Below are positions 1,686 through 51,368 of a stretch of DNA of 64,000 bases, piece after piece. A program made the position numbers and the translations under genes. Numbering within the stretch: position 1 is the stretch's first letter; the number at the start of each line of letters is the position of its first letter. The DNA is taken from NCBI GenBank assembly GCA_048772705.1, contig JBLWGC010000104.1:1116001-1180000 (forward strand), read 5' to 3'. The notes beneath the pieces were generated by a model. It was not told where the DNA came from. It saw nothing but the letters and a program-made list of their open reading frames with translations, and did no database searches. The DNA is from Leidyana gryllorum EB-2025a (lineage: Eukaryota > Protista > Apicomplexa).

Positions 1686-2026
1686 TGAAATGGAAGATAT
1701 ACACACGCAGATCTTTTGCGCAGATGCAAATCGTTTCGGGCTGTCAGGGGCAGCGAGGTTTCGCAACGCCACAAGTAGGTGGCGAAATTTCGGAGACGTC
1801 GCCCTATTTACCTGTCTATGAAGCGGATCAGCGTTGCTTTGTAACATTATTGAGACGTTCTCTCGCGGTTCCGCACTTTGCTGCTGTGGGAAGAGGTCTG
1901 TGAAATGGGGACTCAGTGTAGCAGATCACTACATGTTTTTGATGTGCGATCGTGTCGACACACCTAGGCGTGCGGCAGATCACCCTCACTCGAGATCTTC
2001 TCGCCCTTAAAATTTGGTATACTGGG

Positions 2027-7097: not shown

Positions 7098-10000
7098 TCA
7101 TCTGGGGTGAAACCTTTGCCTTCCCATAGATTCACAACATTTTTGCACAAGATGGCGACGATCATGGCCTGAGTCAAGTACCCTCCACACGGCAGAAGCG
7201 GTGGCTGGGCATTTCTTGCAGACAGTTTTCGCAAGCTGTAGTGTCACCGCCATGAGAACGCCACGCTCCAAACACAGCGACACTCGGGCCCAATCAATGC
7301 CGTCTTGGCTATCGGTGGGGGCCGTTTCGCTCATGAAACCACGCTGTTTACGAGTTGGAGAGACTTTCTCGTGACGCTCGGTGGGACGATCGAGAAGCGC
7401 CCGCTGGCCTGCTCTCGGACTCGACTTCTTGTGAAACCGTCTGTCAGTGACCACGGGATTGTAGCAGTAAGCGAAAGAATCACTGAAAGTCTGATACTCC
7501 TGGTTGTGTTGCCATATTCTGATCACCTCGGCGGCTGCATCCTCTGCGCGAATTTTGATTTCATACTGATAGCGCTGTAAGACCCAATGGAGAGATGTAT
7601 CGAGATCTCGAGGTTGAAGCGACTCATTGATCTCGCAAACTTGTCGGAGTCCTACGAAGCATACAGTGTTTGCTTCGCAGTATAGAGTGGGATCAGTGGA
7701 GTCCAAGAAGTATCTTTTCAGAATGAGCTCCACGGCGACTCTCTCCTCAAAGCTGAGGGACTCCAGCCAGATTCGAAGTCGTTCATCCTCAGACGTCTCG
7801 ACGGCATCGTTGAGTGTTCTGACGCGCAGACGCTTCTTCCATTCATTATCCAAATCCCATGTGATGTTATAGACGGCGTGTAAGAGTGGTGGCAACAGGT
7901 TCGTTTCCAACTGGTCCAAGGTCCACTCCAATTGCTCGATACCACACTCCCCATTGTTGATGGTCTCCACTGCTGTCGACGACGAGGACTCCTGGATCAT
8001 CTTAGAAGCCAGAGCCTGATAGAGGTCAACCATGTCCTGCAACAAAGTTCTCCGTGCCGCATCGGGCCCCCGCAAAAAGACCTCTCCAAATACGACAGAA
8101 ATACGTGACGCTGAGTCCGTACCATTATGCCCGCGTCCCTCCTCCTTGGCCCGTCCTCGAGCCCTTGAGTTGACCACGTATCTATAGCCTGCTTGTGCCC
8201 CTTTGATAACGAAGGGCGCAGCCATGACTACTGCCGCGGTTGGGGCACTCCCCAGCAATAGAACCGTGCTGGTGGCAGCCATGGCAACAGGTGTGAGGAA
8301 CCTTGTAGGATTTCGGGAATGAGGGCATACGGGATGTTCTTTCTCGAGGCACATCTCGATTACGGGCACTTTGATCGTTGCACGCTCGGTGAGACCCTCT
8401 TGTGTGCTAGATCGTGTATAGGGATAGGTGATACGTGTGTTGGACCACACAATACCAGCAACAATTTGGGCTTTTTCCACCGTCAGGGTCAATACACCTC
8501 CCGTGAAGATAGATGGAACGCGTGTGTGACGAAGTTGTTCTCGACGGAGCCGTTCCATCGCCTTTTTGGATGCACATCGAAGGTCGGGTATCGAATGGTG
8601 ATACGCCCGCTCGATAACCTTGGAGTACGGGCGTGGAGTCCCGCCGTACGCCTCTCTCTCTATACGTGGCCACATGAAGCGGCACTGACGGCAAGGTGTG
8701 TTCTCAAAGGTATCAATCAAACTCGTAGACACCCAGAAGCGTTTGCCCGACTCTGTTTGCAGGACCGACCCTGCACCAGAGGGTTGAGGCTGATTTTGCT
8801 CCAAATAAGAAGTCACAGTGCTGTCTCCGCGTCCGAGCGCGAATCTCTGACCCTCACCGCAATCAAACTTCCCCCTGTCGCTCCAAATCACTTTTGACCC
8901 CACAACCTCAAAGGACTGGCCGAGCTCAGGGAATCCTTTCAGCGTGGCCCATTTTTTCGCCTCCGGTGTCGGTGGTCGGCAAATCTCCACCTCCGACCAC
9001 GAGTACTCGCGCTCACTGTCGATCGGCGACTCAGGAAACTTGAAAAAGGTTTCCCTTCCCATCTGCGACAGCCATTTGGGGAGGTCACACCCGTCCAACG
9101 CAGATGAAGGAACTGTAGACAACAATTGCCACTCCATATCTCCAACCTCATAGTCCTCCATGTCGTCGATATCGAGGTCGATGCTCTCGAACCGTTGCTC
9201 CAGATCCTTAGCGATGATCAGGGTGGGGCCATCGCAAGCAATGTTCCCCATGTTGGTGACGGAGTTCCGCAAATTAACAGGTGATGTTGACGTCAAGGAT
9301 CGCAGAGATCGGTGTCTCGTCAGTCCTTCTGCCTCTGAAATGTCTCCAAGAGGAACGATCTGCAGCGTTCTCTGTGCGTAGATATTCTTGTAGTTTCGGA
9401 AGCTCGTGGCGACCTGAATTTGGGCGCATCCACCGGCTTGTTTGCCGTCTCCCTGGTCGAAAACGAGGATGTCGCCTCCATTGTTGTCCAGTCTCGTGTC
9501 TTCGCCATTTTCGAAGCAGTCTGCTATTATCAGCAGTTTAGAAGCCTTCAGTCGTCCCATATTACGCACTTTGTATTCCGGACTTATCAGGCCAACGTCT
9601 AACCCTGTGAGAGAACCAGTCACCACAATGGGTCCTTCCTTGGCGAGCAACATTACATTCCCAGTCGTCGTCATATCTCCGTTGAGACCAATCCCTTCAG
9701 ATCCGCTTCCAATTACGATGAGATCGAAATTCACCTCCAACTTGGTGCCTCCATCAGTCCACGGCAGGGAGCATTGAATGGTCACCAGCTTCACGCGATT
9801 GATGTCCCGACTCTTGGCAATGGGGGCCAGATGGTGTTGCAAATCTGTTCGCATATCTTGGGAATATCTGTCGAGTTCGATACTGAGATGTCGACATCGA
9901 GCGTCTGAGGGGTCAGCAGTCCAGTGGAATGTCTCTCCCTGACACACGATGGTAAGATCGTCCGTACAGTGAACCTTCTCAAAGCCTCGAACTCCGCTTC

Positions 10001-10553
10001 CGCCCTCCACCTTCCACGAACAGCGACGTCCCGCGGAGTCATGCTGCAGAAGCCGTAGTAACTCTCCAATTACTGCCGCATTCGCTGAAAAATCATCATA
10101 AAGGCGATAAGTGATAATGTCGGTGTCCTCGGGCCCCCGTTCTAACTGAATTTCTTCAACGACGTCGGATGTGTTCTCTGACTCCACTTTGAGAGGCCCA
10201 TTTGGGGGCTTTCTGATCCGGAATGGAAGCTCGAATTTGAGCGAAGTACCAAACTTCCATTGGGACGCCAATACAGATACCATAACATTCACGTTGGGAG
10301 AGAGATGTCGACTTATCACTGCCGTCAGATACGCCAAGTCGGCAAGGTCGAGGAACTTTACTGATTCGATCTCCATTGTCCATGTACCATCTTCGTGCGT
10401 CCACTTCGGCGCAGCAGCCGCGGCGCCCAGGAAGGCACTGCAGCGTTCGTCATCTCTCACTGCGCGTTTCACGAGTCGCAGGTTACTCCAGACTCTCCAC
10501 CAGCCCACAAGTGTCCGCCACAACTCGACCACCGCCCAGAAGAGGCCCACCAT
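7098..10553 (-). CDS. Large uncharacterised FHA-like repeat family protein, member C (1151 aa)
   Basis: Intronless ORF and full-length paralogue of A and B, with N-x-G-x-[IL]-x-A type rungs (VRNMGRLKASKLLIIA, FRNYKNIYAQRTLQI, VTNMGNIACDGPTLIIA). Confidence 0.9.
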   Translation of the reverse strand: MVGLFWAVVELWRTLVGWWRVWSNLRLVKRAVRDDERCSAFLGAAAAAPKWTHEDGTWTMEIESVKFLDLADLAYLTAVISRHLSPNVNVMVSVLASQWKFGTSLKFELPFRIRKPPNGPLKVESENTSDVVEEIQLERGPEDTDIITYRLYDDFSANAAVIGELLRLLQHDSAGRRCSWKVEGGSGVRGFEKVHCTDDLTIVCQGETFHWTADPSDARCRHLSIELDRYSQDMRTDLQHHLAPIAKSRDINRVKLVTIQCSLPWTDGGTKLEVNFDLIVIGSGSEGIGLNGDMTTTGNVMLLAKEGPIVVTGSLTGLDVGLISPEYKVRNMGRLKASKLLIIADCFENGEDTRLDNNGGDILVFDQGDGKQAGGCAQIQVATSFRNYKNIYAQRTLQIVPLGDISEAEGLTRHRSLRSLTSTSPVNLRNSVTNMGNIACDGPTLIIAKDLEQRFESIDLDIDDMEDYEVGDMEWQLLSTVPSSALDGCDLPKWLSQMGRETFFKFPESPIDSEREYSWSEVEICRPPTPEAKKWATLKGFPELGQSFEVVGSKVIWSDRGKFDCGEGQRFALGRGDSTVTSYLEQNQPQPSGAGSVLQTESGKRFWVSTSLIDTFENTPCRQCRFMWPRIEREAYGGTPRPYSKVIERAYHHSIPDLRCASKKAMERLRREQLRHTRVPSIFTGGVLTLTVEKAQIVAGIVWSNTRITYPYTRSSTQEGLTERATIKVPVIEMCLEKEHPVCPHSRNPTRFLTPVAMAATSTVLLLGSAPTAAVVMAAPFVIKGAQAGYRYVVNSRARGRAKEEGRGHNGTDSASRISVVFGEVFLRGPDAARRTLLQDMVDLYQALASKMIQESSSSTAVETINNGECGIEQLEWTLDQLETNLLPPLLHAVYNITWDLDNEWKKRLRVRTLNDAVETSEDERLRIWLESLSFEERVAVELILKRYFLDSTDPTLYCEANTVCFVGLRQVCEINESLQPRDLDTSLHWVLQRYQYEIKIRAEDAAAEVIRIWQHNQEYQTFSDSFAYCYNPVVTDRRFHKKSSPRAGQRALLDRPTERHEKVSPTRKQRGFMSETAPTDSQDGIDWARVSLCLERGVLMAVTLQLAKTVCKKCPATASAVWRVLDSGHDRRHLVQKCCESMGRQRFHPR

Positions 10554-10607
10554 GATACAATGGAAAAAGTTTTAAAACTGGATCTCGATCAGGGGGATGG
10601 GTACAAT

Positions 10608-11190
10608 ATGATTTTTGTTGTCGCTAGTCTCATCTTCGCCCCAGCAGACAGCATCAGCACCAGCCAGGGACGCAAAAGTTTAAACCTTACAGATCCGGAT
10701 GGAGGCCTCCGTTGACGGGATCCATCGTCTGGTTACGAAACATGCACTGAATGTGGAAATGAGTTACAATCTGGATGCTCCGTACGTGTCTCGCCTCTGG
10801 ATACATCTCCGAATGCCACCATCCGAGTGACTGTGCCATCAGTGCAGTGACGAGGTGGTAGAAAATGGAAGGTGGGTAATTAGCCTCGCAACAGACTTGA
10901 TCCCCGCTCAGGGGTGCCTAGCGTTGGGTCCCAGCGGCACCGAGATCCGTACACAGGGAGGAGACAGAAGAGAGACGACGGCTCCACACAAAGTACCACG
11001 AGCCCTCCACCGAGCAGTTGTACAACAGTTTCGGGTCCCATGGAATTCGCTATCTGCCAGGTGGACGGACACCTGCCGAGTGGAGAAGAGCGGATGGACT
11101 CCACATCCGCACAGCAGTGTGAGCGAGAGAGACGCCGTTCTATGTTCTCCAAGCGCTTTCCCCGGAGACGAAAGTAGGAGGAGGAGCTGA
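10608..11190 (+). pseudogene. Possible decayed relic of the same family
   Basis: Stop-interrupted fragments ENGRWVISLATDL (cf. EGRYRWGLEFPTDL) and ATIRVTVPSVQ*RG (cf. SVRITAPSLSWTG). The similarity is weak and judged by eye. Confidence 0.2.
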
Positions 11191-12154
11191 GTCCATCGAG
11201 AAGCATCGTGGGTAAGATCAAGCAGAACCCATGTGCACTAATTGTGGCCGCGACAGTAGACACAGGACGTATATGGCAACGACGGCATAACTCCCACCAC
11301 ACACCACTTCAAAAACGAGTCGCATTTCCGTCAATGTCACATTCGACTCGGATATATATGAAACTCGACTAAGAGAGTAGGAACACTCCTGTAGCTGGAG
11401 GAGACATGAGAAAACACAACAGAGGCCTCGGCAATCGCTACGAACTAAGAGTCGGCGCGACCGTCATAAGAGAAGAACGCCTTTCGAGTTCGAGACGGAT
11501 ACATCACCTCAACCAAAGGCGCTCAGATATAACTCAGACAACCACTTACCGTTGGTAGAACAAATGTCGCCCAAAAGATGGAGTGTGCTCCTCAGCCGAC
11601 TGTTTCTCCGCGCCACCTCAGCCTCCAGCGCACCTTGTGGAGTGATAATTCGCCAGTGTACTGTCGAGCACAAGGCTCCAAAGAAATTGTATTATTACTT
11701 AATGGTCGCTCACTGCACCATCTAGTAAAAGGCGAGATGGTGATAAGCGCTGAGCAGCCACATGACATATCAGAAGTTTTTAAAGTTCATTGAGGGGAAT
11801 GTTCTGTCTCCAAAACCCGATGTCCCACTATCCGTCTTGGAAGAGGGCGTGTGACTGTTTTCTCGCACCCGTTGAGTGATTGTCTCGGCATTTAATAGCA
11901 ACTACAAACACACACGCTTTGTCACCAACCGCTTGTTGAACACTGAGTGTGATGGACTTATCTGCTCAGCCTGCAGCGGGGAGAATGGACACCACATCAC
12001 GATCCCTGCAGTCTCTTTTAATAAAGTCGGTGGCTTTGAGATTGTTGAGTGGCCTCTGCAAATGGTTGTCACACTCGTAATCAACAGTAATTGAGCTGCT
12101 TTGAAAGTCAGTCGTGCGCCCATTTCAGGATTCATTGAGTCATAATGTTCTAAT

Positions 12155-13030
12155 TCATATGAGTATCACTCCAAGACTGGGGGGATCACAGATAATTGAG
12201 TCATTTTCAGTAACACGAAGGAAACTTGTGGTCTGAGGGCAAACCAGCCGCAGGCGTATATCGGCAGAGAGGATACTAGCAACCGCCTTCACCTCCTCTT
12301 CATGGGTGTCATTGGGGGATCGCTGTAGAAATTGGGAATGGATCGTAATCTCCCTCAAACGCTTGTGTTTATCGTAGTTACACACCTTGTCACTGCCAAA
12401 GTGGGCACGAAGCGCCGAAAGAGGCACTCTCTGAGTGCCGTCAATGGGTCTCAATGCTGCGGTTCTATTGTGAATGTTGACCGAGCAGCTGAGAACCCAT
12501 GTTGGTCCGTCTAACTCACATACAAGGAACGCTGCGTACGGATAGAACAAGGTGAGCTCGTGTAAGAGCGCTCGTAGAGACGTCACGGCCCCTTCGTTCA
12601 GCTCAGTGCATGGGAAGGTTCGGATCGCCAGCTCCGCTCTCGTCTTATCAGGAACCCTTGCTGATGACACTTCTCTAACGGCATTGAGGAGGTAATGGGT
12701 AGGATCAGCCATCTCAGTGATAATGACGTCGGTGGGGACATAAAAATAGACTCTCCCAGTCCAGCTCAATGATGGGGCGGTGATTCTCACCGAGACTTCG
12801 ATCCCTTTTGGCGCGAATTCTGCCACCAGCCGTGTGTAACGCTGCACTTCATCGAAGACGATTTGCTTCGCGAGGAACCATTGAATTAGTTGATGTTTAC
12901 TATCATTTTGAGTCCAGTGAGAATGGGTCGCAGAGCTCGCGAAGCCTGTTGCCTCCAGCACCTTTTCTTTTTTGTGCCAGTCCGGCAGCAGCAACTCGTC
13001 ACACGAGTTGACTGGAACATCGCTCACCAT
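12155..13030 (-). CDS. Short family member D: stand-alone N-terminal module
   Basis: VSVRITAPSLSWTGRVYFYVP...NAVREV...LAIRTFP matches the module motifs VSIEATAPSWSLKGPCHFHVP and SIVVTAKSLNWKSPTHFHV...LRLTTFP. Confidence 0.65.
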   Translation of the reverse strand: MVSDVPVNSCDELLLPDWHKKEKVLEATGFASSATHSHWTQNDSKHQLIQWFLAKQIVFDEVQRYTRLVAEFAPKGIEVSVRITAPSLSWTGRVYFYVPTDVIITEMADPTHYLLNAVREVSSARVPDKTRAELAIRTFPCTELNEGAVTSLRALLHELTLFYPYAAFLVCELDGPTWVLSCSVNIHNRTAALRPIDGTQRVPLSALRAHFGSDKVCNYDKHKRLREITIHSQFLQRSPNDTHEEEVKAVASILSADIRLRLVCPQTTSFLRVTENDSIICDPPSLGVILI

Positions 13031-37697: not shown

Positions 37698-38560
37698 ATG
37701 CCTGCGCATCAGGTACGAATTCCAACCTAAGACTCGAAACACACAGTTCAGAACAGATCTCCAAAAAGAAGAAGTTCGTCCGTGACGGAATCTTCAAAGC
37801 TGAGCTTTCTGAGCTTTTCTCTACCACCCTCGGTGAGAATGGATATGCTGGCGTCGAAGTGCGTATGACCCCGGTCAAGTGAGTGACTCGAGTATCACCC
37901 ACAGCTGACGTCTCATTTGCCAGGACTCACGTCATTATCAAAGCCACGCGTCCCCGTGAGGTGCTCGGCGAGCAAGGTCGTCGTATTCGCGAGTTGACCT
38001 CTTTGGTCCAGAAACGATTCGGCTTCCGCCCCGAGCAGGTTGAGCTCTTGGCTGAACGTGTAGAGAACCGTGGACTTTGTGCCATGGCTCAGGCTGAGTC
38101 TCTCAGATACAAGTTGTTGAGAGGCCTTCCCGTGCGTCGTGCTTGCTATGGTGTCCTTCGCAATGTCATGGAGAACGGAGCTAAGGGATGCGAAGTCGTC
38201 GTCGCTGGAAAACTCCGTGCCCAGAGGGCCAAGGCCATGAAGTTCAAGGACGGATATATGATCGCTAAGGGTCACCCCGCTCGCATCTACATCGAGCAGG
38301 CTATTCGGTCGGTTCAAATGCGTCAAGGTGTTCTTGGTGTCCGAGTGAAAATCATGCTTCCCCACGACCCTGAAGGACTCCAAGGCCCCAAGATTCCCAT
38401 CCCTGATAATGTCTTGGTCATTGAGCCCAAAGCTGGAAGCATGGGTGGAGCCCCCGGTAAGAGCTATGTCCTCCGGGTCAACCCTGAGCCTGCTCCGGCT
38501 GCTCCGGCTCCGGAGGGTGCTCCTGCTGCCGTCCCTTCTGAGGTTCAGCCAGTCCAATAG
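37698..38560 (+). CDS. RPS3: 40S ribosomal protein S3 (2 introns)
   Basis: [47 protein letters not shown]. Confidence 0.97.
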
Positions 38561-38843: not shown

Positions 38844-39938
38844 CTATCTTTTGACCCAGATAGCCTTGAGACATTCGGCAATTTCATCGATGGGAACAGA
38901 TGTGGGGGAGTCAGGTTCGAGCAACGATTCCAGCGACGTCGTTGTGACGGGTCGTTGTCTGTGCCACACCATAGCTATTCTTCGACGATATTTGAGCGGC
39001 AGGCCGATGGACTTGAGCATCGGTTTGACGTCCGTTGACTCTTCGAACCGCCGCAGCCATTGACGTTGTGAGTTGACCGGCATGTACTGCCCACTAACAA
39101 TCGGCCACGTGAAGGCTGCATAGATAAAGACCGATTTCATCTCTGTGGTCCAGCTGGATTTGCTGTTGATTTGAGCAACGATCGCCTCGAGCCATGTAGA
39201 TACGTTGAAGCGGAAGGGGACGAATGAGGCATATCTCGGGAAAAGAACTTCAAATAGGCCTGAATCTGTGAGTGACGAGTAGAACGTTTTTGGATTTGGT
39301 GCTGATAGCCATAAGTCAGTGACCGCGTCAAAGAGTGGCTGCGGCTCAATTTTACTTATCAGGTGGGCGTGATTGCGGATAGCCATCAGATCAGTAGCTG
39401 AGATATGTAGCTTTAGTCTATTCGCTATCCGTATGGCTCTGAGTAATCTGACAGGCTCGATGTTGTATGTGACGTTTGCAGGGTTGACAGTGGCTAGTCG
39501 GCGTTCCTGTATGTCAGCGAAGGCTCTTGGCAGTCCGGTAACCGTGTGCTTGACGTTGTCATAGTACAATGAGTTGATGGTAAAGTCTCGCCGCATAACA
39601 TCTTGTTCAATGGATTTGCCATAGAGATTTCGATCGCCAAAGACGTTGGAAGGTTGACGTAGCGTTGCAATATCTATAGGCGCACCAGTAGTCCGCACGA
39701 CAACAACTTTAAAGGCAGTTCCGGCCACACAGGTTCGATCGGGGAAGAGTGCGACAATTTGATCAGGGGTAGCATCAGTAGCGATATCAAAGTCCTTAGG
39801 TACTTCGTTGAGTAAAAAGTCGCGGATACACCCGCCAACGAGCCAGGCGGAGTATCTGGCGTTCCGCAGAGTGGTCAGTACGCTTCGCACTTCTTCGGGA
39901 ATGCGTTCCTGGTCTAAGACTAGTCGTCGGGTTTCCAT
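38844..39938 (-). CDS. PcnB-like class II nucleotidyltransferase, copy 1
   Basis: LVGGCIRD...PKDFDIAT, RRDFTINSLYYD, EPVRLLRAIR, FIYAAFTWP; intronless. Confidence 0.9.
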   Translation of the reverse strand: METRRLVLDQERIPEEVRSVLTTLRNARYSAWLVGGCIRDFLLNEVPKDFDIATDATPDQIVALFPDRTCVAGTAFKVVVVRTTGAPIDIATLRQPSNVFGDRNLYGKSIEQDVMRRDFTINSLYYDNVKHTVTGLPRAFADIQERRLATVNPANVTYNIEPVRLLRAIRIANRLKLHISATDLMAIRNHAHLISKIEPQPLFDAVTDLWLSAPNPKTFYSSLTDSGLFEVLFPRYASFVPFRFNVSTWLEAIVAQINSKSSWTTEMKSVFIYAAFTWPIVSGQYMPVNSQRQWLRRFEESTDVKPMLKSIGLPLKYRRRIAMVWHRQRPVTTTSLESLLEPDSPTSVPIDEIAECLKAIWVKR

Positions 39939-39943
39939 TGAAG

Positions 39944-41026
39944 TCAAAGATCAGATAAAACGTATAGTGTTTGCAAAACCTGGGATCTGGGGGTATTGTT
40001 ATTGATTTGGCGTTTGGGCAGAGCACTGTCTATGTCAGATGATTCCGTTTGTTTCCATAGGTCCACGATGCTGGCGCGGACCTTCTTGGGAACACTGGCC
40101 GACACCATTAGGTTTTTCACATAGAGGTCGTCTCCGTCGAGGGCCTGCAGCCATTCACTTCGGTGACCACTGTTGGTAGCGGTCTCGTGCACCGCTGGCC
40201 ATAGAATAGCGGCGATGCTCCATATTGCGATATCGCGATGAGTCTGTAATTTTAAAGACTTATCCGAAGAGGCGGTGGTGAGCACCATTGGGATCCAGCT
40301 GTGCCAGTCAGCTCCTATGAACCGGTCCACACTTGTGACTGGGAATAGGAATGAGAGGAGTCCGGTGTCGATGAGGAGTCGGCTGAGTTTGTGGGGCTTT
40401 CCGGTGGCGAAAATGAGGACCAATTCGTCATAGATGCGTTGAGGGACGACCTCCTTCAAGCGATCTTTGGCGTCACAGATTGCAGCGAGCGTGGCTGCGT
40501 CGAGGTGCAAATCCAGCTTGGCAGCGAAGCGAATGCCTCGGAGAAGGCGTAAGGGGTCTTTATTGATGGTGGCCGATGTCGGGGGAATGAATCTCAGTTG
40601 CCGATCAGCAATGTGAGAAAAACTGGAGGGCATCGAAGTGACCTCTTCAGTCCGAATGTCGTAGTACAGAGCATTGATGGTGAAGTCTCGCAGTTCCCAA
40701 TCGTCTTCAAGGGAGGTACCGTAACTGTCGGTTCCAGTTGTTCTCAGAGTACTGATCTCGTAGCGCTCGCCCGTTTTGAGATGCTGGCTGACGATCTGGA
40801 AGGTCTTACCGTAAATATGGGATTTAGGGATAATTTGAGCAATGTTTTCTGGAGTCGCATCGGTGACAATATCAAAGTCCTTTGGAGGGACACCGAGCAT
40901 CATATCTCGAACGCAGCCGCCAACGAGCCATGCCCGATAGCCACGAGATTCTAATTGTTTGACTATCAGGGTTGCGTTAGCGGGGATCAAATTCTTGAAC
41001 TTATCATAAACAGGCAGCCGCTCCAT
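39944..41026 (-). CDS. PcnB-like class II nucleotidyltransferase, copy 2
   Basis: LVGGCVRD...PKDFDIVT, GKTFQI, LRDFTINALYYD, DPLRLLRGIRFAAKL, RIYDEL; intronless. Confidence 0.9.
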   Translation of the reverse strand: MERLPVYDKFKNLIPANATLIVKQLESRGYRAWLVGGCVRDMMLGVPPKDFDIVTDATPENIAQIIPKSHIYGKTFQIVSQHLKTGERYEISTLRTTGTDSYGTSLEDDWELRDFTINALYYDIRTEEVTSMPSSFSHIADRQLRFIPPTSATINKDPLRLLRGIRFAAKLDLHLDAATLAAICDAKDRLKEVVPQRIYDELVLIFATGKPHKLSRLLIDTGLLSFLFPVTSVDRFIGADWHSWIPMVLTTASSDKSLKLQTHRDIAIWSIAAILWPAVHETATNSGHRSEWLQALDGDDLYVKNLMVSASVPKKVRASIVDLWKQTESSDIDSALPKRQINNNTPRSQVLQTLYVLSDL

Positions 41027-41495
41027 TCTGAAGAGGTCGTTCGTTCGTTTATTGACAGGGACTCTGGATCACAGAGAGACGGCGGAGTCGGGCTGAATAA
41101 ATGGGCTGGTGTAATAATGGTGGGTTTATAGGCGCGAAGCTGGGTCCCAAACTCAATAAACAAACTCTTTCTCTGTCTCTAGCTCACTCTCTATCTCTTC
41201 GAGTGAACTCAGTCAGTCAGTCGGTCAATCAATACACAATGACATTCCAGTCATAATAACACATGCGGTTGGGCAGGATGACAAAATACTCAGGGGGGCC
41301 ACCTCACAAACAGTTTGATGAATCTAATTACAATGGCCTGGTGATGGCGCAGTGGAATTGCGCTCAGAGATCGCTCGGCATCGTCTTCGCCGAGGGTAAG
41401 TCTCACACAAGCAGTCGCTTTTAGCGCTGTCTTCCCTTGGCGGCGCACTGGCTTGCGATCTCAGCTGCGTACGCCAGCTCCTTTTCCGCCCTCGC

Positions 41496-42593
41496 CTAGA
41501 ACAACAGCAGTTTCTGGCATAGGACGCGGAGGGCGTTTGCTTCCTCGGGATATTTGCCATCGGTTTCCTGAATAGGGAAGATCTGTTGTCTCCAGACAGA
41601 GGAAAGGGCTCGACGGTGTCGGAGTGGTAAGCCGGTACCTTTGGTCAATTGTCTATAATAATCGTTATCACTGTCGAGATATTCCCAGACAGAGCCGCCC
41701 CGCTTCGTTCTGCGGATTTCATGGGTCACAATGGGCCATAACAATGCAGCAAAGATGAATACAATCTGGTTGTTTCGAGGAGATTTCAAATCCACTGCTT
41801 CGAGAACACAACGGAACCAAGTTTCTATTGAGACTTGATAGCTTGAAAATTCACGCTTATAGTGAGGAAACAATATATCGAATAGCTGATTGTCTCGTAA
41901 CAACGGGTATATAGTCTGCGGATTCCCCGTTGTAAACATCAACATCAGCTCGGCGAACAAACGCTCCTCTTTAACTTCACACAACAAATGCCGATTAGCT
42001 TGAATCCCATAAGATGTCTCGGGTGGCAATGGTAAGCCCAGACGGCTTGAGAGCCGCAATGCAACCAAGACTTTAAGCGGATCCTTTTGATAACTCTTAT
42101 CGGCCCGGCTTGCCACTCGACAACTTCCACTATCGCTACTATCCCGATCTTCACTATCACCGTTCGTCATCACCCGAGAAGAGCACGAAGATTCCAACAA
42201 CTTTGACACAGAATTGTGATGTGCGTTCTCAAGATTTCGGTCGCGCCGTCGGCATCGGTCCAATTTACGACGATCCAACTCACGTTTACCAATAGAAAAA
42301 GGCCGGCACACAGATATCTTGTCGAATTCACCAGTTTCACCTCTTTTGGACCAAATCACAGCCAATGTGTAAACGCCGTGGTGCTCTCCATACTCCGGAA
42401 ATAATGATCGGACTCGCTCGGCTGGAGCAGAGGTCACGATGTCAATCGCTTTTGGCACTCTTCTCGCTAATATAGCTCGTGCACATTCTTGACCCAGTTG
42501 GGCCTTATGTCCTTCGTTCTGCAATGTGGATAATAAGTTTTGAGTCTCATGGGGAATGAGACTATCTCGTACAGATCTTTGACGGGGGGTCAT
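41496..42593 (-). CDS. PcnB-like pseudoenzyme, copy 3
   Basis: Motif A is degenerate (LGQECARA...PKAIDIVT) and RRDFT is lost, but KDPLK, ERLFAEL and FAALLWP are kept. The ORF is intact. Confidence 0.75.
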   Translation of the reverse strand: MTPRQRSVRDSLIPHETQNLLSTLQNEGHKAQLGQECARAILARRVPKAIDIVTSAPAERVRSLFPEYGEHHGVYTLAVIWSKRGETGEFDKISVCRPFSIGKRELDRRKLDRCRRRDRNLENAHHNSVSKLLESSCSSRVMTNGDSEDRDSSDSGSCRVASRADKSYQKDPLKVLVALRLSSRLGLPLPPETSYGIQANRHLLCEVKEERLFAELMLMFTTGNPQTIYPLLRDNQLFDILFPHYKREFSSYQVSIETWFRCVLEAVDLKSPRNNQIVFIFAALLWPIVTHEIRRTKRGGSVWEYLDSDNDYYRQLTKGTGLPLRHRRALSSVWRQQIFPIQETDGKYPEEANALRVLCQKLLLF

Positions 42594-44095
42594 CGAGAAA
42601 AATATGTGTCTTATTTCAAACCTATCCAACTATCTGATGTGCAACACGACCCAAGTGCTGAGCTGATCGCCGATTGATCCACTAAAACACAAGTATCGAT
42701 CCTACCTTCAGGCACTTTATCATTTCCAAACGTCAGTGTTCTTATCTCAAACAGTCATAGCCAGACCCGTTCCCCCACAAATGATAGCCTATGTATTCCT
42801 AAGGCACTCCCCCTCGACCAATTTCAAGTTATTCACCCCTCAAGACCCCGCAATCATGCACAAGTCCGATGTCAGCATTGTAGTACTCGTGTCTCCTAGT
42901 GTGTGTGCTATGAATGAGTGTTGGAAGAGTCTCAAGTGTCTCCAGAGGTTGGTGGGATACACTTCATTCCCGGAGAATAAACAAGTCCTTAGCTGGATTC
43001 TCTCTCTTCCAACGCTGTTGGGAGTGGTGGTGACTCGGTCAATGGTGAGTCTTGAGGTATCAGATTGCTGCACAGGCCAGTAGCTTTGGCAGAAGTCACG
43101 ATATCCTTGCGTCGGTGGGACTCTGCCATTCTCGGACGAATACATGATCTCATAATGCGTTGGCAAGAGATTGCAGATCTGACAATCCGTATGCCTGGAG
43201 AGGGTTATGACGACCGCACACGGTGGCGATTCTAATTCTGAAGTAAAGCTTTCTGGATGGCGAGGCGTTGGCCTATCAAGTATCAGACGAGTCTGCAGCT
43301 ATCATCATCTCATATAAAAGGCGTCTCAACGACCATCAAGGCTTCCGACTGTGCATTACTGGACTCCCATGAATGGGTCTGCTCAATCTCGTTTCGATTA
43401 CCGACCAAGCCGCTAAAGTGCTGCAGATGGTCCGGATTACGAAGTCTCATACCGTAAGTGAATAAGTACGACGATAACAGACTCATCAGCGGTTCTCGGT
43501 CTTCCTGTCCACCCCGCTTACGAGACCTTAAGGCGGCATCACCCTCTCACCACGAGTTCTGACCTCTCTGAGTTCGCCGAATGCAAGGAGTATCCCTAAC
43601 AACCTGACTGATAGAAGGGCACAACATCTGACTGTTTCCAGAAGATACGGCTCTGTACAGCAAATTTGAGCGACGTACTATGCCGTCGTTGAGGACATTG
43701 GCTGTCTCTTTCCGTTCATACTGTCTCTGTCCGCTTTTGCGGCGCTTGTGTAGACGTACCCAGGAGAGTGAGCCCTGTTGAAGACTCGGAGGTGATCGAG
43801 GTGTCCACTCAAGTGATCAGAAGGTGCAATCACGAAGTCGTTGTGGCAATTGTGCAGAGTCGCAGATGACGGACGATGGATACCGAACGGTAAGAAGAAT
43901 TATCAGCCAGTCATCTGTCCGAAGGAATCTCATTAGACTCCCCGCGACTAGAGTCCGACCATACTGAATCACTGATGGGATGGCATATATGTATGAATAA
44001 TTGTAAGGATGCTGTATACATTCGAGTCATGTCAATGTTGCCACAGCTCCTTTGCAATTTGAGACTCTGTCATAAAAAGTGGCCCAAGAGTTACA

Positions 44096-46106
44096 GTGAT
44101 GTCGCCGAGCCTCAGGGAAGTTGCCCCCCGACATGTCCGACTTGGCGATTGTCTGGACTTCTACGAGCCCGTCAGACATCTTCTGAAGGAGAACAAGCCT
44201 TTGGTTGCCTTCACTCGACCTATACGTTTGAAGCGTGTGATCGACTATGGACTCCAACGTCGCCACATCTTGTGTGGCAGGTTCGAGACGGGTTTGTCTG
44301 CTGATGCGGTGGAGGACAGGAGGTGGTCAGAAAAGCCACATATGCAAACGGTAATTCATAATGCAGAAACCGGGAAGCATCTTCGCTCTTTAGAGTAGCG
44401 GGCATTGACTGATGGATGCGTCGCAAATTGTTTGGTCGGCCGACACCATATATCGGGAGTTTCAAAAATTCGCAGTTGGCATGTCTCCAGTTCTGCTTAA
44501 GCGCAAGCCAGTGGGACGAACGGTGCTCGATTTGCCGTTAGTTCTGGTCGAATCTCTGGTGGTAGCTCCGAGTGATGTGCCGCCCTTCGACACATTCCGA
44601 TCCCTGCTAAGATGGCGGCCGACGGACGTGAACTCGCATTCCCGCCAATCATCCCCGATCACCGATGACCTGATGTTGGTTTACGATGGATGTTTGAGGG
44701 CTGGACCCCACAAGTCATCAACAGCGTGCACAAAGCGGTCCAGAAGCTGCCAGATGGCAACACTCGGACGTGGTTCTTTGATGCTGAGGGTGTGGGGATT
44801 CACAGGCCCTTGAAGGATAGAATATTTCGTTTTATCACAGGTTTAAGCGAATGTAACATCCCATGTAGACATTTAACTGAAGTTCGCTTCCTCGCCGCGC
44901 AGGACCTGCCTTTGTGTGCCTTCTTCACGCCCTCGGGGGGATTTAAGAGGGCAGAGGGCATTGAGGTCGAAGCGGCGCTGTGTTTCTATGACACCCAGAC
45001 TGCGACATTTTACTTTGCAGAACTACGCAGAGACGAGAGAGGAGAGCTGAGTGCCCGAACTCGGACGCTCGGTTAACACACCCGCGACTTTCGAGGACTC
45101 CGAGTGGCCCGAGAGGAGGGCTGACGAGTCTTCTTTATCGGCGACCCCCGAGAATCAGTCGAGTGGGGATCACTCCGGTGGAGGGACCAATCCCACCTCT
45201 GCCGAGACAGCCCACTCTCCAACTGCCCCCTTACCAGTGGAAGTAACAAACACAATCTCCACTTTTTTGGAATCTTACGACAAGAAACTGAGCTCCACAC
45301 TGGGTGAGGGAGACGCACTGTGCACACGAAACATTTGGACGAGCCGCGAGATCCCACAGAGAGTGAGAACAGTCGATGACTTCCACGGCCTCGCGAAGAG
45401 ATACGGCATCGAGAATCTGAAACGTACACAAAGCGAGTGGTGGTCCTTGGATCAGGTGTTCCATACACCCACTCAAGTCCAATTCAAGCCGTGGTCGAGG
45501 TGCCCTTTAAGCCTCTTTGGGTACTCCGAAGAGCGGGGCGGGAGGTGGTTGTATCAACCGGACTTGACGCCCAATGGAGTGTGGCAGTCGACATCCGGTG
45601 ATTTGCTGGGGACGTCATGTGAGGGAGACTTTCATGCACTGGTGCAGGAGAAGTGGAGCGAGTGGGACGTTCAGCATTCCGCTGATGTGAGCGCTAAGCA
45701 GGTTGGAAAGGTACTGACTGGAATCAGCGTACGATACAGTTTGCCTCCCTGGGCCCGAGGGAAGATTACGATCACTTCAGAAGGTGCATGGTTGCTGGCG
45801 ACATTGGATATCATAGGGAATGAAGTGGACGAGGTGGCTGATTTCAAAGTCCTCAAAGAGGAGAATGTCCTGATTGGGATCACTTTCATGCAGGTGTGGC
45901 GGGGAGGCAAACTGCTCGCTATACAACACGACCGTCCAGGATGGTGTAGGATACGGTTCGAAGATGGAGAACATCGTTTCTACCCTTCCGAGGAGCGAAT
46001 GTCGCCATATCAAACACTGAGTGTTGAGAGCGCTATGACGAAAGCTCGCGAGATACTTTCTGAGAGCCCAATCGACGAGCTGCCTTCAGCGACATGTCCC
46101 CAGTAG
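44096..46106 (+). pseudogene. Fragmented unknown gene(s) in successive frames
   Basis: Same-strand ORFs 44096-44398, 44412-44813, 44690-45076 and 45051-46106 abut or overlap without convincing splice sites. Confidence 0.4.
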
Positions 46107-46253
46107 TACTGCTGATGTGTCTTCAGTAGGAATCATTGGTACTCGAATAGGTTTCCAGTTTGTTGTCAGTGAATGAATCCGTGTTCAACAACAAGCAGCG
46201 ATGACGTTTGGACGTTTCGGTGGCTCTCTTTCGTTGTGTGTGTTTCTTGGTGA

Positions 46254-48908
46254 TCAATTAGCAGCAAACTTTTCAAAAAAGGCAGTGAGAGCATCATCAC
46301 AGTCAAGTAGCTGCTTCTGACGGATTTCGAGCTCCTCCAATCCGAGATCCCTCTCTTGAAGCCTTTGGTTCTTGAGCTCGTCGATAGCAGCTTGATCTTC
46401 TTCAGTGATCCGCTGTTTCCACTCCTCAACGTAACTGGCCTCCTCCATCCTCAGGGCTCGGGCATAGTGATCAATACGTTTGGCTTCGGCCCTCTTTTGT
46501 CGGATGAGTTCCTGTCGAGTTTTCTGTTGGTAGTCTTCAACCGCTTGTTCGAAGTCCCTAAAGTTGATCTGTCGAGAGATCAGAGCTTCTGGTGTCAAGG
46601 AACTGACGGTACTGCCACACAGAGTGAAAGTCGAAGTCGAAGAACCTATTTGATTGATGACGTTCTGAATCTTCTTGAAGAGAACGCGGGCACACTCGAG
46701 ACGAGCCGCCTCGGCCTCCTCTTTTCTCTTCATTTGCTGACGTTCTTCAGCCAGTTGTCGCTGCTTTTCCTGTTCCACCTCAGCCTCCCGTTTAGCTTTT
46801 TCTTTGGCCAATTCCTCCAAGTCTTCATCGCGGCGCTTCTGCAGATGTTCCATCTCTGTGCGTCGTTGTTCCAACAGTTGAAGTCTCTCGGCGTTCTTGG
46901 AAGCCTCAGACGCCAATCTCAACTTGAGATCCGTCACCTTGGCTGCAGCACACGGTGGTTTGTTGGCCGCAGTGATTCGCAGAAGGGCTGCACTCAAAGT
47001 CGCCAGGCGCTTGTTTACTATTCCATGTGGATCCTGAGTCTCCTCTTGGCTTAGTTTGATTACCCCCGAGAGATAATCGATCTTGAGATGCAAGAAGCAC
47101 TCGTCGACCAAGCTGACCAGAGAGTGTTCAGCGGCGCTCCAACTCATGAAGCTTTGGGGACAGATCTTAGTGCGGAAGTAATCGATCGAAATTGTCGAAT
47201 ATACCCCCGACAAACTGATTATCAGTTTCCGGAAGATAGCCTCCCTCATATAATTCTCATATTCACCAATGCGACGCCTCAATTCCTCAGCGCTAGCGAT
47301 CTTGGCGTCCCCGTCAGCACCAGTCGTGCTCACCTCCAAGGCTTGCAGCTTGGCCACCAGGTCCTCTTCGATTTGTTTGAAGAGCGGCTCAATCTTTTTA
47401 ACAGCGGTGAGACTCAGGAAGTCCTGGCCCTCGACGATTTGGAACAGTTCTTGCACAGACTTGATGCCGTGTTGCAAGAGACCCCGATCTCTCAGAGCAC
47501 TGACGAGAGATTCACGGGTTGGGATTGTGGGATGACCCAAGAGAGTAGTCAGGCGCTTCTCCTCGTCGTAATTGGCAGTTACAGATCGACCACCGTTACG
47601 AGTCACTGGGACCCCAATGACGGCTAACGCTGCCATAGAGGCCCAAATCTCCAACTCCTCAGTAGACACCTTCTTATACTGACGGGTATGGCCCAACCAC
47701 TTCAACAGAGCCAATGCGTGCAACCCACGATACCCACTCCGACCGAACACTTCTGCGAGCTTCTCATAGTAAGTCGCCAGAGACACCAGCAGAAGTTGAC
47801 GCAACACACCAGAAGTACCCCGACTCTTCGCACCTCCCCTCTTTCCAGCCAGATCAATGATTCCCAACGAATAACTGCTCACACGAGGAGATATTGAAGA
47901 ATTAATCAAATTCGATCACTTACAGATCCTCCATTGTCTGCATGGCCTCCTTCCAGAGGTTTAACTCGGCCGCATTAGTCAATTGAGACAATCGAGTCTC
48001 AATGTGCACTTCAGGAGCGCGCAACTCCTCAATGTCGAGACGGGTAGCGGCATCCGCATCCGGCTTCAACTTGGGCTTCAACAAGGATTGGTAGTGATTC
48101 CGAACCATCTCACACAACCGACGGAACTCGTTCGGCTTCTTGTGTACTCGGCAGAAACCGAAGGCCTTGTGAGCCGTCTCGTGGTACACTTTGTGCAACT
48201 TGGGCGTCGTCTTGACAATGTCCATGATGGTGCGGTACACCTCAAACACCAATCGCATCTGGTGATTGAGATCACGCGCCGCATCTGTGCTGGGGTCCGT
48301 CTGGTGAGCGCACATCATCAACGTCTCAGCCTCGTCGCCAGCGACTTCCGCCTCTGGCGCAATCAATGAAACGGATGACGGTGGTGTTGCTGTTCCTCCA
48401 GCCGCCACCAAACCGCCCTCTCCACCGAGAACGGCAGCTCCATGGGTGCTCAATGCTGCCTTCTCGGCCTTGGCGAAACGCTCTTCGGCAGCCGTGCGGA
48501 ATGTCACCAAGACGCGAATCAAAGGGCCCAACTGGGCAGTTGTGTGCTGACAATGGTTGCGATACTGCAACAAACCTTCACGAACAGCCTTGACTCTGTC
48601 CAATTCAACCGCCAGCCGCGCATACTGAGTCACAACCTCTTCCTGTTGTGTTGCATCCCATTGCATATACCTGAAATGCCAATATCGGGCGGCTCAAGCG
48701 ATGGGCAAATCACATCATCCAGGGATATACTTCCCGCCATGTAAAACCCATTTCATTCCCAAGACTTTTGGGACCACGTCCTAACTTACCGAAATTTGCG
48801 GTCAGTGATCGTCCGGTGGAGTGTTTCGAAGGCCTCTTCGGTCTGGCCGACAGAGCGGAGCTCTGTCGCTCGTTGGAGAGCATTCTTGGGCTGCAGGAAC
48901 TGCTGCAT
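46254..48908 (-). CDS. EIF3A: Translation initiation factor eIF3 subunit A (multi-exon)
   Basis: PKNALQRATEL, REGLLQYRN, YHETAHKAFGFC...EFRRLCE.VRNH, ELNLWKEA, PCI region, IDHYARALR.EE. Confidence 0.92.
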
Positions 48909-48977
48909 TCAGCCCACCCCGAAAATTTTTCCTGTTTTGACGGTTGCTAAATGTGTTTCCAATATGCATTATAGTCT

Positions 48978-49935
48978 CTAACTGGTAGGGGCTGCAGGTC
49001 TGAACGAAGCAATGAACTCAGATAGCTCGGCTTCGGTCAGTGCGGTCACGATTCGTTCCTTTTTGTCGTTCATTTCGACAATGGACACTTCCAGATTCTG
49101 CGAGCCAGGGTCAATCACCTCTAGCAGTCCACTTAAAGCCAACTTGATGGTCTCCGCTCGAGTCATATCCGCCTTCCAGGTCTTCTCGAAGAACCTGCCG
49201 AACGGAATGTGATCAATGCATCCCAATTGTAACATCTTCCACGCATAAGAGCACACATTGAAACTCACTCCTCGACAGTTTTATCGTTCCGTCCCACGGC
49301 ATGAGCCTTCCAGCCAGTTAGAATACCGTGCGGCTCGGTGTTGAAGAGTTGGGGCACACCACTGCTGTCAAATCCCGCGATCAGACACGCGACACCGAAT
49401 GGGCGCATACCGCCTCGCATGGTGAAGCGCTGCTGTAATCTGGCTATATACCGTGCAACATAGTCGGCTGTGGGCTCTTCGTCAGCTGTCAGCCTGAAGC
49501 TTTGGCACTCAACTCGCGTCCTGTTAATAAGAACGCGCCCATCGGCGGACAAACCGGCAAACGCCAGGGCAATTCCGTCGTCCACCATCTCAATCTTTCG
49601 CACACTCCGCATATCTTGAAGTTTAGCTGCCACCTTCCGCTCCACAGCCAGAACAACACAGTCCTTCCCTGAGGACGAAGTGATTTGATCTCATTCCTTC
49701 AATGGACAGGACTCGAGTAACAACAGGTGAGAATTATCAGGGTGGGAACAAGGGGGAGTAACAGGAGTCAGGGAGGGGGACACGCAACACACAAATGCAG
49801 CATGATGACGACATTACACTCACCTTTCACCCCGACAGCGCACAGTCCTCGCTTGACTGCCTCGGTGGCATACTGTACCTGCAACAAATGCCCATCTGGA
49901 CTGAAACGGGTGATAGCACGGTCGTAGTCTGTCAT
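48978..49935 (-). CDS. PSMA7: Proteasome subunit alpha-4 (2 introns)
   Basis: [49 protein letters not shown]. Confidence 0.92.
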
Positions 49936-49979
49936 GCTGAAGGCTTCAAATTGGTGGTCTTTTTTGATTTTTGGACTCA

Positions 49980-51368
49980 ATGAACTTGGCCGCGACAGCG
50001 GTAGATGACAGAATTGACGCATCATTCAATGATGCGGGGACCTTGAAGGCTATATTGGACAACTGGAATGCTCACAAGTGGCAGAAATCGCTAATTGACC
50101 AGCATTGTATCATTGACCCTCGGCTCCGCCTATCAACGGTTCGATCTGCTGAACTCGGCTACTTTGCATCGGCTTCCATCGCAGCGGGCAGAACGTTGAT
50201 GGTAGCCCAACCTGTCCTCCGAGCTCAGGTGAGAGTAGCTGCAGGGTCAAAAGCATGTGACCACAATGATGTTCAGGTGGGTAGTGAGGAAGATCCCGTG
50301 GCAGCTTTGACTGAGGCTTTCTCAAATCTAGTCAACGACAAAGAACGAGACTTAGCTATTGCGGTTTTGAAGAATCTCTGGCCGCGAACAGAAGACGAAG
50401 CAAATGCCTTGCCACCAGCATGCGGTCCTCTCGATGACGATGTCATTCACCGATGCGTTGATCTTTTGGGTGGTGCTGCTACGGCCTCCCCGTCAATGTC
50501 ATTGTCAACGTTACAGCAGAAGATAAGATGGAACCATATCTTATGTATGATGAACGCAGATATGTGCGTGGAGTCTGAGGATAACTATTGGGCCCTATAT
50601 GGCCCAGTGTCGTATATAAATCATAGCTGTGAACCTAATGTGGTTCGAGTCACAGTCGGCTCATCACTGATTATCAGATCATTGCGCCAGATCGAAGAAG
50701 GAGAAGAGCTGTGTATGTGCTATTGCGAAATGGAAGTTTCACGAGATAATGTTCTGGAGCGGCGGGCTCAGTTGGATTTTGACTGTCAGTGCGACCGCTG
50801 TGCGGATGAGTACGCTGAAGACCAGGAGGATCTCTGTGCTCAGACCTATTTCACCATGGAGTTGGATGAACTGGCGCTAACATCTGCTGAGAAGCGAATC
50901 TTGAAACTTGACAGAGACCTCGAAAGGCTTCTCACTGGGCGGCCTTCCACTGCAAGGGATATGGGAACAGCACGGACAGTCGACTTTCTACCTTTAATGG
51001 TCAAAGTACTCAAAGTTCGACAGTTGACTGTAGAACGATTGCGGCTCTTTGACTTGCTCTTCAGTACTTACTTTGTTCTCGGAGCCAAAGCCCCGGCACT
51101 ATTCACCGCCTTAGTTTCCGCCTTTCTCACCCAAGATGCTGATGGACAACGCGTCATACTCACCATCCTGGAGGATCTTCTGGATGCTCAACCTCATCAG
51201 GTCCTGCAAGAAGCTCTTCAGCCCTTCAAGGTTCCAAACTCTACTTTCGTCTCCATTGATGATACCACTTTGAGCCCCATCATACGCTCGCTGAGTCTCA
51301 TGATGGACATTGACCAGCAAGGCTTACAATCTTCAGCCACCAAGCTCTTCGAGTTGTGTTCTAGGTAA
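49980..51368 (+). CDS. SET-domain (SMYD-like) lysine methyltransferase
   Basis: [16 protein letters not shown] and post-[11 protein letters not shown]. Confidence 0.82.

Follow-up and report, generated by a model that had tools for sequence, protein, structure and literature searches.

A tandem array of PcnB-like nucleotidyltransferase genes, one of them a predicted pseudoenzyme, in the genome of the gregarine Leidyana gryllorum

The window analyzed here is a 64,000-nucleotide stretch of the apicomplexan Leidyana gryllorum EB-2025a (contig JBLWGC010000104.1 of assembly GCA_048772705.1, positions 1,116,001 to 1,180,000 of the forward strand, with coordinates below counted from its first letter), and it contains a tandem array of three open reading frames (ORFs) coding for proteins related to PcnB, the bacterial poly(A) polymerase I (PAP I). 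All three are co-oriented on the minus strand, have no internal stops, and lie between RPS3 and eIF3a, both of which contain introns. ORF1 (38844 to 39938, with its ATG at 39938) codes for a PcnB-like class II nucleotidyltransferase of 364 amino acids (aa), ORF2 (39944 to 41026) for a similar nucleotidyltransferase of 360 aa, and ORF3 (41496 to 42593, with its ATG at 42593) for a 365-aa paralogue that is predicted to be catalytically dead. ORF3 and ORF2 are separated by a 469-nt spacer (41027 to 41495) that presumably holds the ORF2 promoter and 5' untranslated region, but the ORF2/ORF1 junction (39939 to 39946) is much tighter, with the ORF2 TGA (39946 to 39944) followed by a 5-nt spacer and then the ORF1 ATG in a different frame. 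Given the base composition, frames of this length would remain open by chance with a probability of 1e-7 to 3e-9 (3e-9 for ORF3). RPS3 (37698 to 38560, plus strand) is convergent with ORF1, with 283 nt between the two stop codons, and has two short introns placed by protein homology (37713 to 37756, 44 nt, and 37879 to 37923, 45 nt); eIF3a (46254 to 48666, minus strand) has a 49-nt intron at 47923 to 47875 and serves as a synteny anchor, and a DEAD-box helicase is among the other neighbours of the array.

The only domains that Pfam identifies in the three proteins are of class II (PF01743 and PF12627), with no class I PAP family in any of them. The PolyA_pol head (PF01743) is recognized in ORF1 (E value, 1e-25) and ORF2 (E value, 2.7e-23) and has no Pfam match in ORF3, and the PolyA_pol_RNAbd neck (PF12627) is detected in all three. 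ORF1 and ORF2 have in common the signature LVGGC[IV]RD..PKDFDI.TDATP, and G..F, RDFTIN[SA]LYYD, AA..WP, and P..R..I..W..Q blocks are also found. Motif A is intact in both, as GGCIRD...KDFDI in ORF1 (residues G35 to D51, including the catalytic D49 and D51; positions 39786 to 39836, minus strand) and as GGCVRD...KDFDI in ORF2 (residues G36 to D52, including D50 and D52; positions 40871 to 40921, minus strand), and motif B reads RRDFTIN in ORF1 and LRDFTIN in ORF2. The motif D arginine is kept in ORF1 and ORF2, with IEPVR in ORF1 (a glutamate in place of the base-contacting aspartate), KDPLR in ORF2, and KD..K in ORF3. Each of the ORFs starts only ∼32 residues ahead of motif A, which leaves no room for an organellar leader within them, although a spliced exon further upstream could in principle supply one.

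ORF3 departs from this pattern at the active site: GGCVRD is replaced by GQECARA and DFD by AID (in KAIDI), motif B is gone, and residues ∼99 to 160 form a low-confidence acidic/basic insert in the head. The neck and body are nonetheless retained in the predicted structure, with predicted local distance difference test (pLDDT) values of 85 to 98. ORF3 is thus a predicted pseudoenzyme, with its active site destroyed and its reading frame, neck, and body preserved.

The best NCBIfam model for all three proteins is TIGR01942 (pcnB), with 201, 203, and 93 bits for ORF1, ORF2, and ORF3, respectively. CCA models score 44 to 137 bits and cover only the head and neck of ORF1 and ORF2, with one model extending further in ORF3, at 35 bits. 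The ratio of pcnB to CCA scores is 1.5 to 2.1 for the ORFs, compared with 1.75 to 2.4 for true PcnBs (gammaproteobacterial, verrucomicrobial, chlamydial, spirochaetal, and deltaproteobacterial sequences scoring 301 to 483 bits) and 0.7 to 1.0 for CCA-type proteins (acidobacterial and viral sequences). The best solved relative by sequence is Escherichia coli PAP I (125 bits, residues 14 to 325), whereas Bacillus CCA scores 81 bits and other CCA- and A-adding enzymes score 37 to 76 bits, among them eukaryotic CCA enzymes at 39 to 60 bits (human TRNT1, 53, and Arabidopsis CCA, 43); the Bacillus, human, and Arabidopsis matches cover the head and neck only. The predicted structures are in agreement, with an AlphaFold2 model of ORF2 (pLDDT 88.6) having a template modelling (TM) score of 0.77 to E. 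coli PAP I (3AQK/3AQL/3AQM), against 0.50 to 0.67 to CCA- and A-adding enzymes. In hhalign comparisons, for which the CCA-type profile group consists of Acidobacteria only, the head and neck do not discriminate (371 for PcnB versus 349 for CCA-type), but the body domain does: the probability is 96.1% for the family versus PcnB (E value, 2.9e-9) and 0.2% for the family versus CCA-type. Because sequence, predicted fold, and body-domain profile all agree, it is well supported that the array genes are PcnB-like, rather than CCA-adding enzymes or copies of the organism's own CCA1.

The similarities with bacterial PcnB/PAP I (TIGR01942, NF008634) include the head-neck-body order, the DxD of motif A, the RRD..TIN motif, an EDxxR-like motif D, and the PcnB-type body. 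However, the gregarine proteins are shorter (∼360 aa compared with 420 to 470 aa) and lack the C-terminal leg, the loop before the DRN.YG element is shortened, and little is left of the N-terminal extension of the bacterial enzymes; the gregarine genes are also nuclear and are organized as tandem or fused multi-unit genes that include dead copies. The class II CCA enzymes (1MIV; TRNT1, 4X4W; and the Leidyana CCA1 on contig C82) belong to the same superfamily and share the head and neck, but they have no detectable body similarity to the gregarine family and score lower throughout, and the Leidyana CCA1 reads AGGWVRD, the eukaryotic form, and is interrupted by introns. A first-pass annotation of the window had described three co-oriented intronless ORFs beside an intron-containing RPS3, and the coordinates, open frames, and presence of introns in RPS3 are confirmed; the motifs it quoted are present in the sequence, its view that the proteins resemble PcnB more than eukaryotic CCA1 or canonical PAP is borne out by NCBIfam, the PAP I fold, and the body profile, and its points that the basic C-terminal leg is largely missing and that there is no organellar leader are supported, the leg being absent and no leader being visible within the ORFs.

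The array genes belong to a family with members in at least three other gregarine-like data sets, where they are found in tandem (contig L010, from Logan ERR10900107, which carries P0125), fused (P0121), or as a single gene (P0191). An exhaustive HMMER search of 1.84 billion representatives recovered P0125 and P0191, and its top match (309 bits) is P0121, a single 1,347-aa ORF with four family units on contig L006. The contig starts with a SMART template-switch primer and is therefore probably cDNA, and its DNA has no nucleotide match in the Leidyana genome. Units 1 to 3 of P0121 are without the DxD site (GYE, RYE, and HYR, respectively), and unit 4 is intact and is cut off by the contig end. 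P0191 (Logan SRR28734874) is a stand-alone protein of 340 aa and is the closest relative of ORF1 (39 to 41% identity), with which it shares the motif D glutamate. Contig L010, which comes from a closely related gregarine, also carries proteasome and eIF3a genes and is collinear with positions 46260 to 50140 of the window across these genes, at 70 to 76% nucleotide identity; the two eIF3a proteins share 81% of their residues, and a proteasome segment is 93% identical. Two PcnB-like genes lie directly downstream of eIF3a in L010, in the same orientation as in the Leidyana array. The first of these (L010 positions 3848 to 4738) codes for ∼270 to 296 aa without most of the body, and is either a truncated copy or contains an unrecognized intron. 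Within the Leidyana genome the family is limited to the three array copies, and the remaining class II genes are a CCA1 of the eukaryotic type (contig C82) and a degenerate gene (contig C2). The latter (C2 positions 162480 to 162695; L004 positions 1294 to 2177, minus strand) is class II-like, with GSWVRN for GGWVRD and a RDLTIDALYYD motif, and is separate from the C82 CCA1.

Divergence within the family is extensive. ORF1, ORF2, and ORF3 are 25 to 33% identical to each other, which is no closer than they are to bacterial PcnB, and for ORF2 a Cardiobacterium PcnB is a better match (186 bits) than ORF1 is (172 bits). The L010 PcnB-like genes are 31 to 40% identical to those of Leidyana, beside an eIF3a at 81%. 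In the family tree the four units of P0121 form their own clade (support 94/89), as do the two L010 genes (85/77), whereas ORF1 falls together with P0191 and P0121 (87/81) and ORF2 and ORF3 are separate lineages; catalytic loss occurred in at least two events. Conserved blocks persist across species in the family alignment. Because the array copies are so dissimilar and do not group together to the exclusion of other members, and because the family is present in other data sets, the array is, as judged from sequence comparison, the form that an older multigene family with fast evolution and a birth-and-death history takes at this locus, and not the product of a recent triplication. The motif D aspartate position also varies among the active-looking copies, with D in ORF2, E in ORF1 and P0191, and H and S in the two L010 genes, so that nucleotide preference may differ from copy to copy.

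Phylogenies were built with LG+G4 on 43 rows, with the C20 mixture on 31 and 17 rows, and with FastTree on 144/150 best representatives. The family is a single clade with both models (99/95 with LG+G4 and 97 with C20). With LG+G4, all CCA-type rows, including an exon of the Leidyana CCA1, are beyond a 98/97 branch from the family, and the bacterial PcnBs in the sample group together without it (100/98); the C20 tree likewise has these three clades. When the family is constrained under C20 to group with gamma- and betaproteobacterial PcnB, the tree is 3 log-likelihood units better than the free tree (approximately unbiased [AU] test, p 0.585), and a proteobacterial donor is possible. Named proteins among the best matches are all bacterial PcnBs, led by Cardiobacterium, and no eukaryotic relatives other than the gregarine-like contigs are present among the best 150 of the 1.84 billion representatives or among the named matches. 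EukProt and MMETSP proteins are likewise absent from the family matches, although these entries were searchable, with RPS3 matching EukProt. P0191 alone joined the gregarine clade in the FastTree phylogeny, and word-index searches with ORF1 and ORF2 listed bacterial PcnBs, with gregarine relatives not among the listed matches. We found no literature report of a PcnB-type enzyme in an apicomplexan nuclear genome.

A phage origin was considered and rejected, as viral contigs match less well (best E value, 4e-38) and group with the CCA-type enzymes. The second and third best matches are multi-head class II enzymes, P0269 and P0123. P0269 (L009 positions 8001 to 11942) is 1,313 aa long with two PolyA_pol heads and an HD domain, and is encoded on a phage-like contig that also has genes for terminase, thymidylate synthase, and Cpn10/Cpn60; P0123 (L007/L008 positions 8001 to 12362) is 1,453 aa long with three heads and SLH domains, and adjoins a giant SLH/Calx-beta protein. 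These multi-head enzymes of bacteria and phages (P0123; P0122/P0269) resemble P0121 in having several PolyA_pol heads in one polypeptide, but their units group with viral CCA-type sequences rather than with the gregarine family, and the proteins carry SLH or HD domains.

The joint explanation that we consider the best, and reasonably probable, is that these genes constitute a gregarine family derived from bacterial PcnB, acquired once and then subject to birth and death, with probably active as well as dead copies. Most likely, a PcnB-type gene would have been acquired from a bacterium in a single horizontal transfer by an ancestor of several eugregarines, after which its descendants would have changed very fast in sequence, with tandem duplications, fusions, and losses along the way. 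ORF1 and ORF2 are probably active enzymes that add ribonucleotides to RNA 3' ends without a template, as they keep the DxD head, the RRD/LRD ribose motif, the neck, and the PcnB-type body. Their substrates would most likely be nuclear or cytosolic RNAs, since the ORFs are without a leader and this group of gregarines seems to be without organellar genomes: a COX1 search across the 15.5-Mb assembly gave no match, and the Gregarinoidea reportedly have no mitochondrial genome (PMC8051059). By analogy with PcnB tails in bacteria, short A-rich or mixed tails would mark these RNAs for 3'-5' decay. The proposed activity is functionally analogous to that of Trf4/TRAMP and the TUTases, which also add untemplated 3' tails feeding decay in the nucleus or cytosol, but those enzymes have the unrelated Pol beta class I catalytic scaffold and the likeness is one of function only. 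Leidyana retains a canonical PAP (PAP_central), PAP_assoc genes, and the eukaryotic-type CCA1, so that the tailing activity would be an addition to these and not a replacement. We hypothesize that the dead units are RNA-binding or scaffolding partners, because P0121 fuses dead and live units and dead copies arose repeatedly. A complex prediction for ORF2 with ORF1 scores 0.44, against 0.39 for the control, and speaks neither for nor against an association.

Several observations weigh against this reading. The pcnB scores of the ORFs (∼200 bits, and 93 for ORF3) are below the curated TIGR01942 cut-off of 305.65, and body segments of single proteins have no match in NCBIfam or the PDB, except for ORF3, at 19.8 bits to pcnB, the body-domain signal being clear only when profiles are compared with profiles. 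The Arg-rich C-terminal leg, PolyA_pol_arg_C (PF12626), which almost every bacterial match listed carries, is absent from all three ORFs, and with the motif D aspartate so variable, adenylate specificity cannot be assumed. The very fast evolution could reflect relaxed constraint, and an ORF1 start 5 nt after the ORF2 stop is awkward for eukaryotic translation. The family, PcnB, and CCA-type enzymes meet at one node, so a position sister to PcnB depends on rooting among the CCA-type enzymes; such a root is the usual view of PcnB origins. The sampling of the trees does not extend to complete eukaryotic CCA1 proteins or to organellar PAP-like proteins of plants or alveolates, and a grouping of the family with the Leidyana CCA1 is not rejected (AU p 0.139), in a test that is weak because this intron-split gene is represented in it, as in the trees, by one short exon fragment. 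This last result, together with the long branches, which invite artefacts, and the LG tree, in which the family is not nested within any sampled bacterial subgroup, is what would be expected under vertical descent, with the family being an old eukaryotic class II enzyme, such as an endosymbiont-derived organellar PAP/CCA paralogue, that survives only in gregarines and became PcnB-like through fast change. We consider this unlikely, however, as the body domain fits PcnB and not CCA-type profiles, eukaryotic CCA enzymes score far below PAP I, the Leidyana CCA1 matches the family profile in the motif B to D region only, the only eukaryotic relatives among the best 150 or named matches are gregarine-like, and the lineage appears to have no organelle genome for such an enzyme to serve. 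A more trivial source, a bacterial contaminant or an assembly chimera, might be suspected from intronless and closely spaced ORFs whose best matches are bacterial, but this is scarcely credible. The contig is longer than 1.18 Mb within a 15.5-Mb assembly of 237 contigs, intron-bearing eukaryotic genes are on both flanks, the GC content and codon usage of the ORFs are within the range of their neighbours, and identity to any bacterial match is 35% or less. The RPS3 exon at 37883 to 38560 shares 90% identity with transcripts of Gregarina sp. in EukProt and 83% with Protomagalhaensia wolfi, indicating a host of the terrestrial eugregarine type, and the independent L010 contig has the same linkage of the family to eukaryotic genes, which excludes a contaminant join. 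Horizontal transfer from a bacterium is the best explanation of the family, and a probable one. The first-pass annotation had proposed horizontal acquisition followed by triplication, of which bacterial origin stands as the best reading and triplication does not; of the outcomes that it said would overturn its proposal, a contaminant join is not seen, and branching with vertically inherited CCA/PAP enzymes is not recovered in the trees, where the Leidyana CCA1 falls with the CCA-type enzymes away from the family, with the AU result for its single exon as the qualification.

Alternatives to the proposed function start from the same data. The active copies could instead be tRNA repair enzymes adding CCA, CC, or A, with the work divided among paralogues as it is in Aquifex. 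The differing motif D templating positions recall such a division of labour, and the head and neck are about equally similar to CCA-type and PcnB profiles; but the body, the part with which CCA enzymes hold tRNA, is of the PcnB type, PAP I is the closest match in fold, the genome already has a canonical CCA1, and evolution this fast (31 to 40% identity where eIF3a has 81%) is unexpected of a housekeeping tRNA enzyme, making a tRNA repair role improbable. It is more improbable still that the genes are non-functional remnants of transfer drifting to pseudogenes, with neutral decay accounting for the family dynamics. Extreme divergence, loss of catalytic motifs in ORF3 and three P0121 units, loss of the RNA-binding leg, and the 5-nt junction would all fit such decay, but all three frames remain open against the odds given above, conserved blocks are shared across species, the fold predictions are confident, and the multi-unit ORF of P0121 is uninterrupted for 4 kb on a contig with a cDNA primer. 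A further and speculative possibility, to which we give little weight, is that the array is a conflict-driven RNA-tagging system in which live units, with nucleotide pockets diversified at the templating aspartate (D, E, H, or S), add distinct untemplated tails to foreign or aberrant RNAs (from viruses or transposons) in the cytosol or nucleus, and dead units, generated recurrently, stand in for the lost leg as RNA-binding or specificity subunits. On this view an arms race would lie behind the extreme divergence between close relatives, and a physical multi-subunit machine behind the fused multi-unit proteins. None of ORF1 to ORF3, P0121, or P0125 matches a PADLOC family of known anti-phage defence at an E value of ≤0.01.

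The surroundings of the array have additional features of note. The 3.6 kb between eIF3a and ORF3 (42630 to 46254) contains ORFs without a Pfam family, such as one of 351 aa at 45051 to 46106 on the plus strand, and no decayed remnants of the PcnB-like family were found in 42594 to 46300 or in the whole window. As the PcnB-like genes of L010 begin within ∼150 to 220 nt of eIF3a, this stretch is evidently an insertion or replacement relative to L010. At the ORF2/ORF1 junction, translation of ORF1 would need an internal promoter, reinitiation, or splicing. Two candidate in-frame GT..AG introns span the junction (39961 to 39909, 53 nt, and 39979 to 39909, 71 nt), and either would fuse ORF2 to ORF1 in phase 0, but their donors (GTTTTA and GTTTTG) are unlike those of the three local introns. 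These short introns (44, 45, and 49 nt) have donors GTACGA, GTGAGT, and GTAAGT and acceptors ACAG, CCAG, and GCAG, and the features of the RPS3 and eIF3a introns may help gene modelling in the Leidyana gryllorum genome.

PcnB is known as a proteobacterial RNA-decay factor, and its presence in an apicomplexan nuclear genome is unreported in the literature that we found. Should ORF1 and ORF2 prove active, RNA tailing of a bacterial style would operate in gregarines next to the eukaryotic PAP, Trf4-like, and CCA1 enzymes. The array also bears on how transferred genes settle in eukaryotic genomes that are very compact, and its start codon 5 nt behind a stop calls for an explanation. With its stand-alone, tandem, and fused members, both live and dead, the family provides a natural series for studying how nucleotide and RNA specificity change in class II enzymes, and one that is also useful for the origin of pseudoenzyme partners.

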